Positions 6,454-62,586 of a stretch of DNA of 64,000 nt are shown here, piece by piece. The notes below the pieces were generated by a model. The model searched no databases and was not told where the DNA came from. It saw only the letters and a program-made list of their open reading frames with translations. Source of the stretch: Octopus sinensis (Eukaryota); assembly GCF_006345805.1 (NCBI RefSeq), contig NC_043011.1, positions 65,112,464 to 65,176,463 on the forward strand, written 5' to 3'. Position 1 is the stretch's first letter; each line of letters opens with the position of its first letter. Position numbers and translations under genes: made by a program.

Positions 6454-6493
6454 ATGATGAAAATTGCAGCTTTTATTTTTGTTCTCTTAATTA
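6454..6493 (+). CDS. Gene A exon 1: signal peptide MMKIAAFIFVLLI + phase-1 donor
   Basis: ATG ATG AAA ATT GCA GCT TTT ATT TTT GTT CTC TTA ATT A|gtaagt. Basic-then-hydrophobic N-terminus and consensus donor. A 40-nt exon with the same phase recurs at 26425, 38791 and 60159. Confidence 0.85.
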
Positions 6494-6653
6494 GTAAGTA
6501 TTTTTATTACTATCTTGCTAATTGATCTGACAATAATTATCAGTATATCTCTGAGTTTCAATCAGTGTAATTAAAAAAGAAAAAAAATAGAGCAGTAAAT
6601 ATTTATCATAATTCCTCTTTGTAAATATATTTCTGTATCGACTTAAACAATTA

Positions 6654-7540
6654 CACTGTACGATAGAAAAAAAACGGTTTCCTTGCTATTTAATAATTTT
6701 CAGCTGATTTAAGTTAATTTTGGGTTGCCGAATCAGAATCTGACATCAGTTGACAGAGAGCATGTGTAGTTGTTTAGTTATTCACAGCATATTCCACGCG
6801 GTTGATCATATTGACAATATATTAGACTATTTGATTTCGATTTACACTCATAAACTCATCACGGAAACAAAAAACAAGTGCTGATAGAAGAGAATATAGG
6901 CTGCGTGTTAAATTGCCACACAAGATGAGAATTCATTTTTCATTGACATCGCTGTGGTTGTAGTATTGAATGCGCGCCGAGTGATACAATGGATCACTGT
7001 GAATGACCAGGATCTTTAAAAAAGATTTCTCATTTATTAATTCAACCTGAGTGGAATGATTTAGTTAGACACTCGGATTTATCAAAACAAAAACGATCCA
7101 AAATACTGGAAACCAATTTGAAACAATGTTTTTTCCGCACAATGGCAATGAATATCATTCTATACCACAAGTACTAGCTGTAGGACTAAAGGATACTTAT
7201 GAATCAATGGATAGAATTTCGCTCTTGATTATATATTGTGAACACAAGTGTAATATATGCGGGGTCTTGAAAGTTATTGGTTTGTTTCTTGGGTTGCAAA
7301 TGGGCTATAAAAATCACCCGTGCATTAAGTGCCTTTGGAAAAGCCGAGATGACAATCATCACTTTGTTCAAAAAAATTGGCCAACGTGAAGTGATTTCAA
7401 TCAGGGAGATACAACGTTAAATAAATCCCTTTAGTTGACCCTCATAAAATTTGCCTTCCTCCCTTACACATTTAAGTTGGCTTGTTTAAGAATTTTGTTA
7501 AAGCTTTGAATGAAGATCGTCACGTGATTAGAACCACAAG
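6654..7540 (+). mobile_element. DNA transposon remnant, probably Chapaev3/CMC-like (paralogs about 26620-27460 and 60356-61450)
   Basis: CACTG terminus; FFPHNGNEYHSIP...LKDTYESM...ICGVLKVIGLFLGLQMGY...CIKCLW transposase motifs. Superfamily assigned from memory. Confidence 0.55.
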
Positions 7541-7829
7541 CTTTAATATGAAAAATGCCGCTAAGATTACTTATACTCCATTCTCCGTTTCGCACGTTAT
7601 TACAGGAGGCACTTTGTTATTCAGTAGAGAGTCCCATTTGTAAGGTATATTGCAATCACCACACAATGTCGGGAAAAAGAGGGTAAGTAATGATGTAGAA
7701 AAATCTACTAGATAGGTAAAATCGGTGTCTCCTTTAAGAAATACCGATGATGTTGAAGAAGCATTTTGGAAACACCAGTCCAAGGGGAATATATATATAT
7801 ATATATTGGGAATATGCAATAAGAACAAA

Positions 7830-8150
7830 AGACGTAGACGAGTGACAAAACGAGAAACAAATGTATCATTTTAAGGCACCGGAATTGAGAGTATTTAAAG
7901 GAACAAAGAAAAAAAAAGGGAGAGAAAATATAAAAGGTTTAATAGCTAGGGATTTATGATAGCGAATGCCGAACAAAGGGGCACGCCCTCCGTCTTCCCT
8001 TTCTCTTGGCCTTTCCACTGTTCTCTGATTCAGAAGAACAGTTTTGCTCGAATGTAGTGCTATCTTCCTTTCCTTCACTGAGTGTCTGCTAATGCGTTTC
8101 ATGTACCACGTCGTTGCCTTTTGTTTTTTCTTCGTTTTTTAGGGTGGAAC
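7830..8150 (+). repeat. Interspersed repeat in intron 1 (also about 42860-43230 and 61735-62095)
   Basis: Three homologous copies at equivalent positions in genes A, C and D. Confidence 0.7.
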
Positions 8151-58600: not shown

Positions 58601-60158
58601 AAAAACAGGATAAAACATTATGTAGAAAAAGAAGAAAGAGTTGAATTAACGGAAAGTTTGGAAATTCGGAAATAATTTTGAACATTGCCATAGAAAAAAA
58701 TTGAACTTAAATTGTATATATAATTTTGTGTCAGTGTGTGTGAATGAGTTCACGTGTAGAAACTTGTTTCTGTCTATGTATATTCACACTTCTGGTTATA
58801 AATATACATATATATATATATATATATATATATATATATATATATATATATATATATATATATATATATATATATATATATATATATGTATTTATATATA
58901 TATATATATATATATATATATATATATATATATATATATATATATATATATATATATATATATATATATATATATATATATATATAGGACGGTGTTCCGT
59001 TAGCTACCGTCTGCAAAACACCCTCAAAAGGCATTGGTCGGACAGAGTCTATAGATGTAATTTGCACAAGCTGAGACTGAACTTCTGTCAGTAGCGCTTT
59101 ACTAAATGCGTTGTACTAATTCAGATACGGCGAACTTCATCTTGCACGTAGGACTATCTTGCGGAACCACTTACACTTACACATGGGAAGCCCCTTTGTA
59201 CAAGCATTCAGTTGTAATAACTAGCAACCAGAACTACAAAAGTATATCGAAGAACAACGAAAGCTGATGCTATCGCAATAGTTCGCCAGCCATAAATTCA
59301 AACTGCAAGCATACAGGAGATTCAATGCCAGGTGACACGTCACCCACGCAGAAGATGCGAACATCCAGGTACCGAAGTCCCCCACCCCCAACCGAAGGCA
59401 ATTACACCATCACAATTATTATACGGATGGTGGTGCTAAAGCATGTGTACTAATCTATCTTTCCCCGTTACATATTGGAAAACTGATAAAAAGAAGCAAA
59501 ATTGTTATGCATTGTTTTCGTTAGTTATTTGTTACAAGGAATCAGTTAAAAGTGATGTTTTAGTGTACAAAATTAGACTTTAGATTTCTGGAGAAATAAT
59601 ACCTTGTATGGTCACCAAGCTTCATACAATTAAAAAAAGATGATCCCCATGAATCTTCACGATTTCCAATACATCAAATTGGATAGATAAAAATCTGCCC
59701 AAACGCTCAGAAATTGTGTTCTATAGAAAACCCAAAAATGATCTCCAGTCAGTTGCCTGAAAGTCTCAAGGTCCAGGTCAAATTTCAGGTCCCTATGCTG
59801 TCACAGCCTAATCGTATCTGTCAGATTCATATCAAATATATATATATATATATTGAGTATATTTAAGAGCAATAAAGAAGAAACAACAATATCAATTTCC
59901 TATGATTTGACAAATATGAAATCACAGTAAATTATTCTAAGTAAGATTCTGATCGTGCCGCATGCAGCGGCGAGGACAGCAGAACAATTGTCTTAAATAT
60001 ACGGAGTGTAACATATGTTATTTTATATTTACATATATATATATATATATATATATACATATATATATATATGTATATTATATTATATATATATATATAT
60101 ACATAACCCATCTTGAAGACAGCTTTTTCATTAAATCCGGTGGTGAAGCAGTAAAATT

Positions 60159-60198
60159 ATGATGAAAATTGTCGCTTTTATTTTTGTTCTCTTAATTT
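60159..60198 (+). CDS. Gene D exon 1: signal peptide MMKIVAFIFVLLI
   Basis: 40 nt, T|gtaagt donor, 3 nt different from gene A exon 1. Confidence 0.85.
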
Positions 60199-62486
60199 GT
60201 AAGTATTTTTTAATTACTATCTCCCTAATTGATCTGACAATAATTTTCAATATATCTCTGTGTTTCAATCAGTGTAAATAACAAAACTCTAGAGCAGCGT
60301 CTATTTATCATAATTCCTCTTTGTAAATATATTTCTCTATCGACTTAAACAAATACACTGTGCGATGAAAAAAAGGTTTTCTTGCTATTTAATCATTTTC
60401 AAAAGATTTGGGGCAATGTTAGGGTGCCGGAGTCGTATCTTGCATCAGTTTTCAGACAACATGCGCAGTTGTTTAGTTATTCAAAGCATATTCGATGCGA
60501 TCGACAATATTCACAAAGTATTAGACTATTTGCTTTCGATTTACATTCATATTCTCATCGCTGGAACAAAAAATAAATTCTGGTAGGAGTAAATATAGGC
60601 TGCGTGTTAAATTGCCACCCAAGATGAGAATTAATTCATTTTTCTTCGTCATCGCTGTCATTATAGTATTGAAGGCGTTCCGAGCGATACAACAGATCGC
60701 TGTGATGAACCAGGATCTTCAAAAAAGTTTTTTCTTTTATTGATTCAACCTAAGTTGAATGATTTAGTCAGACACTCGGGGTAACAAAAAAATGTCAAAA
60801 ATACTGGAATCCAGTTTGAAACAATCAAACCTTTTACAGGATCGTATATAATGCTAGGCGTTTGGAAATCGACACACAGAATTGCATTTTTTTTTACGAA
60901 GAAAGACGAAATTTGCTTTTGTTGTGATGTTGGAGGACTATTATTTGAGACGGGTTCTGGCTATAATCCTGAAGAATGGTGACACTTAATACATTTTAGC
61001 AAAGTAAGCCTAAGACCTGTTTTTCTGAATAATGGCAATTAAAATCATTCAATACCACTAGTACATGCTGTAAGATTAAATGATACTTATGAATCAATGG
61101 TTAAAATTTCGCTCTTGATTATATATTGTGAACACAAGTGTAATATATGCGGGGTCTTGAAAGTTATTGGTTTGCTTCTTGGGTTGCAAATGGGGTATAA
61201 AATTCACCCGTGCATTATGTGCCTTTGGAAAAGCGAGAGGAAAATCATCACTTTGTTCCAAAAAATTGGCCAACGTGAAGTGATTTCAATCAGGGAGATA
61301 CAACGTTAAATAAATCCCTTTAGTTGACCCTCATAAAATTTGCCTTCCTCCCTTACACATTTAAGTTGGCTTGTTTAAGAATTTTGCTAAATCTATGAAT
61401 GAAGATCGTCCACGATTCAATGCAAGTCTCACGCGATTAGAACCAAAAGCTTTAATATGAAAAATATCGCTAAGATTAATTATACACTATTCTCTGTTTC
61501 GCACGTTATTACAGGCCGCGCTTTGTTCTTCAGCAGAGATTCCCATTTGTAAGGTATATTGCAATCACCACACAATGTCGGGAAAAAGCGTGTCAGTAAT
61601 GAAGGAGAAAAACAACTAGTTAGATTAAATCGGTGTCTCCTCTAAGAAATACTGATGTTTTGGAAGAACTTTGGAAACGCCAGTCCAAGGGGAATATATA
61701 TATATATAAATATACTGAAAATATGCAAAAAGAACAAAAGACGTAATGGGTGTATAAAAATATAAAAATGTATCATTCTAAGGTTCCGGAAGTGAGAATC
61801 TTTTACATTTCGATCTTACGCACTTCGACGGAAAGGAACAAATAAATAAACAGGGAGAGAAAATATATTAGGTTCCATGGCAAGCGATTTATCATCGTTA
61901 ATGCCGGACAAAGGAATTACTCCGACTTCCCTTTCCCTTGGCCTTTCCTTTGTCCTCTAATTCAGAAGAGCTCTGCTCAAACGTAATGCTATCTTTCTTT
62001 CCTTCCCTGAGCCTCTGCTAGAACGTTGCATGTACCTCGCCCTGGGGTTGTTTAGTTTTTTCTTCCTGTTTTGGGGTGGAATTAATTATGTGTGTTTACA
62101 CACCCACAAACACACACACACTTACACACACACATATATATATATATATATATATATATATAACATAATCTATCGGTCTGTATATACGTGACAGCGTGCC
62201 TATATATGTATGTGTGTGTGCAGATATGTATGTGTATATATGTATGTATATATATATATATATATATATATATATATATATATATATATATATATATATA
62301 TATATATATATATATATATATATATATATATATATATATATATATATATATTTATATATATGTATATACTAATGTTAAATATGAGACCTTCTGTTCTACT
62401 TTCTGCTGGCAATTTAAGTTAGACTGACAGTTTAAATTAAAGATCAATGTAAATTTACGATTTAAAACTTTTCTTTGAAATCCTAG

Positions 62487-62586
62487 GTGTATCAAGTTCC
62501 TGCATTATCGGCATGTGTACAGGTTACTCTGGCTTTCGTTGTGGCACCTCCTATAGCGAAAATGCAGGCGTACGTCCTGCCCAGCG
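62487..62586 (+). CDS. Gene D exon 2: (C)VSSSCIIGMCTGYSGFRCGTSYSENAGVRPAQ(R); exon 3 expected beyond the window end
   Basis: ttttctttgaaatcctag| acceptor, CG|gtaggt donor, 100 nt open frame. Intron 2 homologous to B/C runs off the window. Confidence 0.85.

Follow-up and report, generated by a model that had tools for sequence, protein, structure and literature searches.

A tandem array of small, fast-diverging peptide genes in Octopus sinensis that may encode membrane-tethered surface peptides

When a set of very short open frames recurs along a stretch of duplicated DNA, are the frames genes or have they merely stayed open by chance? Duplicated DNA holds reading frames and splice dinucleotides free of cost for a time, which makes the choice between real and chance frames the main question for the locus described here. 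The locus lies in Octopus sinensis (Eukaryota; RefSeq assembly GCF_006345805.1, contig NC_043011.1, positions 65,112,464 to 65,176,463 of the forward strand), in a stretch of 64,000 nucleotides (nt) that is referred to as the window throughout. Between positions 6454 and 62586 of the window, four gene copies, A to D, stand head to tail on the plus strand, each with three short coding exons. A sequence-only reading had described them as a tandem family with a signal-like first exon and a hypervariable middle exon, a description that the gene structure and the divergence of exon 2 support. The gene structure, its upkeep against frameshifts and stops, and an excess of divergence confined to exon 2 are all seen directly, and the four-copy observation is correct and non-random.

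The first coding exon measures 40 nt, the second 100, 82, 100 and 100 nt in A, B, C and D, respectively, and the third 58-70 nt. All donors are GT and all acceptors AG, and the introns are in phases 1 and 2. In gene A, the coding part of exon 1 (6454-6493) encodes MMKIAAFIFVLLI plus one nucleotide and ends at a GTAAGT donor. Exon 2 (9494-9593; 100 nt, phase 1 in and phase 2 out) carries the predicted end of the signal peptide, a hypervariable core and a conserved N-A-A-x-R-P, and the coding part of exon 3 (14936-14993) encodes LFGYAILTTILQTQIILE and the stop. With a slash at each junction, the boundaries of this gene read ATGATG...TTAATTA/GTAAGT for exon 1, cctag/GTGTATC...CCATCG/GTAGGT for exon 2 and ttctcag/GTTATTTGG...GAATGA for exon 3. 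Its 3' untranslated region probably runs to an AATAAA at 15323.

The equivalents of these exons in B, C and D were recovered by fuzzy search and tblastn of the window, which found no further exon-like copies on either strand of its 64 kb. Gene B has exon 1 at 26425-26464 (40 nt), exon 2 at 31238-31319 (82 nt, 18 nt shorter and in frame) and the coding part of exon 3 with its stop at 36495-36552, followed by an aligned AATAAA at 36744. Gene C has exon 1 at 38791-38830 (40 nt), exon 2 at 44660-44759 (100 nt) and the coding part of exon 3 at 47520-47589, where a displaced stop adds TETVI and the aligned AATAAA is found at 47874. Gene D has exon 1 at 60159-60198 (40 nt) and exon 2 at 62487-62586 (100 nt), and its exon 3 is expected about 5 kb downstream, beyond the window end. 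These models, all on the plus strand, match the earlier ones to the base in collinearity and in the lengths of exons 1 and 2. The conserved last exon claimed for the copies inside the window is present in A-C, and the spliced translations equal the four products given earlier letter for letter.

The splice sites are strong and conserved, with GTAAGTAT at each exon 1 and G/GTAGGT or G/GTACGT at exon 2, and a long pyrimidine tract precedes the acceptor of exon 3. Conservation also reaches upstream of the start codon. The proximal region of gene A (6404-6453, plus strand) holds ATCTWGAA at -51, a TATA-like TTTATAAAAAAAA and an A at -3; the ATCTWGAA motif lies 49-51 nt 5' of the ATG in all four copies, the diverged C included, and all four have A at -3. 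Upstream of gene D, a (TA)n microsatellite at 60024-60105, about 55 nt 5' of the ATG, ends the homology to A and B directly after ATCTWGAA, and the TATA-like element is degraded. Gene D may for these reasons be regulated differently or weakly.

Several lines of evidence bear on whether this structure has been maintained. The pattern ATGATGAARAT-N29-GTAAGTAT occurs four times in the 128 kb of both strands, exactly at the four first exons, against an expectation of 0.00. The first exon of copy C is instructive in this respect. It is only 55-58% identical to the others (17-18 of 40 positions differ) and its flanks cannot be aligned by BLAST. Despite this, its double ATG at the start, its length of 40 nt, its phase and its GTAAGTAT donor are those of the other copies, and its translation is still hydrophobic. 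Insertions and deletions point in the same direction. In paralogous non-coding DNA, 585 indels were counted over 31,440 aligned nt (0.0186 per nt, or one per 54 nt), and 93% of them are not multiples of three. The coding sequences (CDS) contain no frameshifting indel at all, as the earlier claim of canonical splice sites and intact frames had it, and their sole length difference is the in-frame 18 nt of exon 2 in copy B, which is likewise confirmed. The expectation would be 3.4 frameshifting indels per pairwise comparison of a 198-nt CDS, giving a probability of none of about 0.03, or about 1e-4 over three comparisons, values that are somewhat generous because the control DNA is AT-rich and microsatellite-rich and its neutral indel rate is therefore probably inflated. 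In a neutral simulation that placed the observed substitutions relative to the consensus (10, 39, 54 and 19 for the four copies) at random, all four copies stayed stop-free in 0.5-0.8% of 20,000 runs. From these patterns in the DNA, it is quite probable that A-D are, or recently were, genuine protein-coding genes.

The second exon stands out from its introns. When the copies are aligned from the splice sites, they diverge by 0.24-0.39 in exon 2, compared to 0.08-0.16 in the adjoining intron (200 nt upstream and 1200 nt downstream), with ratios of 1.6-4.5 and Fisher p values from 0.02 (A-D) to 1.7e-11 (B-D). As a control, none of 547 non-exon windows of 100 columns in the paralogous high-scoring segment pairs (HSPs) was 65% identical or less, and those with at least 45% GC averaged 84%. 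Exon 2 is about 55-67% identical in five of the six pairs, depending on the alignment, so that neither base composition nor CpG content accounts for the dip. Anchored alignments and HSP windows were used because a comparison with the 88 nt immediately flanking the exon is underpowered and blurred by indels just past the donor, while global alignments of whole units force together non-homologous insertions and are uninformative for C. The divergence is also unevenly spread along the exon. The first 9 nt are identical in A, C and D, and in comparisons with C, exon positions 15-70 differ by 43-54% and the last 30 nt by 17-27%; in the A-D pair, the core differs by 23%, not above the ends.

Two routes could have led to such an exon. 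Because synonymous differences are raised too, positive selection and escape from a gene conversion that homogenizes the introns are not separable here, and the mosaic identities along the locus indicate that conversion or recombination does occur. Either route implies that exon 2 diversity is being kept.

What would these genes make? The predicted precursors have 59-69 residues; they begin like a signal peptide, change fast in the middle and end in a tail that is conserved and hydrophobic. The N-terminus consists of M-M-K and an 11-residue hydrophobic run (mean Kyte-Doolittle hydropathy, KD, 2.4-3.6), followed by small residues rich in serine and threonine (S-x-S). It looks like an endoplasmic reticulum (ER) signal peptide made by exon 1 and the first four to five codons of exon 2. 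The core in the centre of exon 2 has 13-21 residues and contains 2, 3, 4 and 3 cysteines in A, B, C and D, respectively. N39, A40 and R43 are invariant and a single cysteine is the sole other invariant residue of the core; with only one cysteine column shared, the framework implied by the earlier name of cysteine peptides is not borne out. Conservation returns around the presumed signal cleavage site and at the N-A-x-x-R motif, and the end of exon 2 encodes N-A-(A/G/D)-x-R-(P/V) in conserved form. By inspection, a spacer of 6-7 residues, (A/V)R(P/V)(V/A)xx, separates the N-A-small triplet from the C-terminal tail, LFGYA(I/T)LT(T/A)ILQTQIIL plus 1-5 residues to the stop (mean KD 1.3-1.6). The hydrophobic stretch reaches the extreme C-terminus and leaves no cytoplasmic tail, as in precursors anchored by glycosylphosphatidylinositol (GPI). 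AlphaFold2, run on the four-sequence alignment, places helices at residues 3-20, 29-38 and 43-64 with low confidence (pLDDT 59).

In a GPI-attachment signal, small residues occupy omega and omega+2, a few polar residues follow as a spacer, and the protein closes with a moderately hydrophobic stretch. Judged by inspection, the C-terminus of the predicted proteins resembles such a signal, and the conserved N-A-small triplet would be its omega site. A membrane helix at the tail end is the alternative; with either type of anchor, a tiny variable peptide would be fastened to the cell surface. The label "secreted" in the sequence-only reading overlooks this conserved hydrophobic tail, which is a better fit to GPI or transmembrane tethering.

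From that perspective, we propose, with about an even chance of being right, that four or more lineage-restricted paralogues stand in tandem at the locus and encode membrane-tethered variable surface peptides. The ER signal peptide would come from exon 1 together with the opening 4-5 codons of exon 2, and the displayed hypervariable core of 13-21 residues from the centre of exon 2. The conserved N-A-(A/G/D)-x-R-(P/V) at the end of exon 2 is taken as the omega region, and exon 3 would add the conserved, moderately hydrophobic tail of 17-22 residues, serving as the GPI signal or, failing that, as a membrane helix. After processing, a tiny variable peptide would be left anchored on the outside of the cell, each paralogue showing a different one on a common delivery and anchoring scaffold. 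Diversity of the displayed part would be made or kept by diversifying selection, by escape from the gene conversion that homogenizes the introns, or by both. The likely role of such peptides would be surface recognition or interaction with a microbe or another partner.

A number of points weigh against this proposal, and some of them concern the anchor. With its Q and T residues, the tail is no more than marginally hydrophobic, copy C has an additional polar T-E-T close to the end, and the GPI assignment relies on a rule-of-thumb inspection. The alternative that survives best, though it can be held only tentatively, is the one favoured in the sequence-only reading, in which the products are secreted in soluble form, as venom, antimicrobial, pheromone or gamete peptides; the signal would be removed, and exon 3 would encode a clipped C-terminal propeptide. 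The signal-like N-terminus and the hypervariable, cysteine-containing core both suit it, and such genes would parallel venom-gland superfamilies, in which a conserved signal is joined to a hypervariable mature peptide. However, C-terminal propeptides of known secreted peptides are usually polar or acidic, whereas the conserved C-terminal segment here is hydrophobic and ends the protein. Furthermore, the number of cysteines varies, and no dibasic or other conserved processing site lies between core and tail in any of the four proteins; over their whole length, they contain no dibasic site (KR, RR, KK or RK). Provided that the genes are real, membrane tethering is considerably likelier than soluble secretion.

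The soluble alternative also draws on recent work on octopod venom. Venom peptide genes of the SF1 superfamily are reported to form lineage-restricted tandem arrays in octopod genomes, and SF1 precursors to have their own gene structure and to carry (di)basic cleavage sites that flank conserved, neuropeptide-mimicking peptides; the same text lists 27 further venom-gland superfamilies of unknown function (Koch et al. 2026, bioRxiv 10.64898/2026.02.02.703354). The four genes share with SF1 and the other cephalopod-restricted venom-gland superfamilies short precursors with a putative signal peptide, lineage restriction and local tandem expansion. Compared with SF1 by description only, the four proteins differ in having neither a dibasic site nor SF1 motifs and in their conserved hydrophobic tail. 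None of the flanking genes reported for SF1 was seen by Pfam among 20 of the 44 window open reading frames (ORFs) of at least 90 amino acids, and both ends of the window appear to fall within the array.

Other points concern whether A-D are genes at all. The dN/dS of exon 2 ranges from 0.6 to 1.75, close to 1, and the differences among A, C and D, whose exon 2 is of equal length, are even across the three codon positions. A classic signature of purifying selection is thus missing, and positive selection lacks formal proof. In all four copies, exon 2 can also be read in frame 0 without a stop, which weakens the open-frame argument by itself. In the young copies, the conservation of exons 1 and 3 does not exceed that of the flanking DNA. 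The databases offer no relative either. Proteins A-C have no exact match among 15 billion predicted proteins, including those from public sequencing-run assemblies. A profile of the four proteins drew 37 word candidates from a word-indexed database of 5.8 billion clusters, none of them at E<=10, and a HMMER scan of 1.84 billion representatives returned three matches only, none a true relative.

These three matches were rejected as artefacts, being multi-stretch hits to translated tandem repeats (satellite). No match was found for the four proteins in Pfam at E<=10, for the peptide strings in a text search of 8.3 million papers or for an exon 3 23-mer in JGI metagenome contigs, and the best hit of a profile search of PDB had E=0.6. 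The family had been put forward as unrecognized and as one that automatic annotation could easily miss; it has no relative in the searched protein collections, Pfam or PDB, and is apparently unannotated. As for the second frame of exon 2, it would be closed by exon 3 after 7 codons when read at offset 0, and it bears no sign of use. GC content was dropped as evidence for the exons: exon 2 has 48-52% GC, but the window holds 94 patches of at least 46% GC, which are common in introns, and exon GC is therefore not diagnostic.

These observations are what a non-functional array might look like, that is, a recent mosaic segmental duplication in which the "exons" are what is left of a dead gene, or frames that are open by accident, and either have ceased to make protein or never did so. 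Whole units, introns and intergenic DNA included, have been duplicated and are 80-97% identical; dN/dS is near 1 with differences even over codon positions, exon 2 has two open frames, GC-rich patches are not specific to exons and the searched databases hold no homologue. Neutral DNA, however, should not outpace its own flanks in divergence two to four times, and freedom from frameshifts and stops is unexpected at such divergence. It is equally hard to see why copy C, with flanks beyond BLAST detection, should have kept the ATG, the 40-nt length and the donor. We regard a non-functional array as unlikely, and as slightly less probable than soluble secretion.

That the exons belong to something else, either the consensus of a dispersed repeat or transposon or the cassette exons of one array-spanning gene, is very improbable: the region is repeat-rich and has LINE fragments between the units, but the copies are collinear and in the same orientation, run exon 1-exon 2-exon 3 with an own ATG (A at -3) and an own stop, have no further exon-like copies on either strand and, among the intron ORFs scanned against Pfam, contain none that matches a transposon domain.

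Placed among known systems, the array is an orphan family of a familiar type, namely tandem, fast-diversifying genes for small signal-bearing peptides. The MASP and mucin families of Trypanosoma cruzi, which act in parasite immune evasion, combine a conserved signal peptide and a conserved GPI signal with a hypervariable centre. Here, too, conserved and putatively targeting ends frame a variable region that would be displayed, in a multi-copy array. The trypanosome is not related to octopus, its proteins are much larger and have no sequence similarity to those of the array, and a role in immune evasion need not apply here. In size, there is a parallel with mammalian CD52 and CD24, tiny GPI-anchored proteins that are single-copy, heavily glycosylated and not hypervariable. 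Their precursors of about 60 residues are almost entirely signal peptide and GPI signal, as those of the array would be on the proposed reading, so that the mature peptide is only one to two dozen residues long; the octopus peptides are multi-copy, hypervariable, free of N-x-S/T sequons and without sequence similarity to CD52 or CD24. Conotoxin-type superfamilies and hypervariable antimicrobial peptides of molluscs, such as mussel myticin C, have a fixed cysteine framework and a variable peptide that is C-terminal or precedes an acidic extension. The present genes resemble them in a conserved, signal-like first exon, in long introns that have changed less than the peptide-coding exon and in rapid diversification of tandem paralogues, but the cysteines of the array vary except for one invariant column and its C-terminus is the conserved, hydrophobic part. 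Finally, the term micro-exon genes, as used in the sequence-only reading, does not fit. Schistosome micro-exon genes have many symmetric exons of about 6-36 nt in multiples of three, whereas the genes at this locus have only three coding exons, of 40, 82-100 and 58-70 nt, that are asymmetric in phase and whose lengths are not divisible by three.

If expressed, the array would be an unannotated, taxonomically restricted family and would illustrate how short multi-exon genes escape ORF- and homology-based annotation in large, repeat-rich cephalopod genomes. If not expressed, it is merely a repeat-rich segmental duplication. The locus also offers a clean hypervariable exon within more conserved introns in 64 kb, a compact system for weighing diversifying selection against gene conversion. 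If the peptides are membrane-tethered, they would be concrete candidates for cell-surface or contact recognition in animals with few such molecules known. For instance, one summary of earlier work describes an as yet unidentified cue in octopus skin that keeps the suckers from attaching to arms of the same animal (Nesher et al. 2014, summarised in PMC9339708). It is highly speculative, but conceivable, that the array supplies an octopod with a set of tiny hypervariable surface peptides, anchored by lipid and serving as a contact-read molecular label, whose diversity is kept in one exon while conversion homogenizes the rest. Equally far-fetched at present are the particular labels that could be imagined, such as the skin cue against self-gripping or a code for individual, gamete or symbiont recognition.

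The surroundings of the genes reveal how the array has been shaped. The window has 33.7% GC and is rich in microsatellites, and by self-BLAST the genes sit in a mosaic tandem segmental duplication with 80-97% non-coding identity between copies. The introns and flanks of the units are 80-93% identical, while two intergenic blocks reach 95-97% (20717-21811 compared with 49225-50311, and 22985-24820 compared with 53251-55085). The second of these, a 1.8-kb block upstream of B and D, is 96.8% identical, far above the gene bodies (80-93%), and this contrast marks the array as a mosaic shaped by later duplication or gene conversion. Positions 1-6000 of the window are homologous to intergenic DNA between C and D (51052-59603). 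Since the first 6 kb match DNA upstream of D, the array probably extends past both window ends.

Repeats are not distributed as the earlier phrase "transposon-filled introns" suggested. Remains of a non-LTR retrotransposon with a long interspersed nuclear element (LINE)-type reverse transcriptase (RT) lie between units and not in introns, at 16017-22035 on the minus strand and at 49225-50526; the RVT_1 and zf-RVT fragments fall at 19.5-22 kb and 49.5-50 kb, on the minus strand. Pfam, in a scan that covered 20 of the 44 window ORFs of at least 90 amino acids, identified RVT_1 in the ORF at 19569-20552 and zf-RVT in that at 20938-22035, both on the minus strand, and found no domain in intron ORFs. 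The second, partial LINE copy (49225-50311) is 95% identical to 20717-21811, and among named proteins the RT fragment comes closest to one from Octopus vulgaris, at 78% identity. Rfam and tRNA scans of the window gave no matches.

The introns instead contain microsatellites and one foldback-like repeat. In intron 2 of gene A, two inverted arms of about 200 nt (12844-13049 and 13686-13892) are 85-86% complementary and lie beside (TA)n tracts; a counterpart is found in gene B at 34776-34973. The pair forms a foldback element, or one resembling a miniature inverted-repeat transposable element, that is older than the A/B duplication. Intron 1 of gene A has a segment of about 1 kb (8168-9282) with up to 54% GC and without a paralogous counterpart in the other units, which appears to be an insertion specific to A; the ORF at 8413-8802 within it has no match in the Pfam scan. 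Between C and D, a short, decayed stretch resembling a C2H2 zinc finger (...H-TGDKPY...) at about 52060-52250 on the plus strand is broken by a stop, and probably represents a fragmentary pseudogene from a class that has expanded in octopus genomes.

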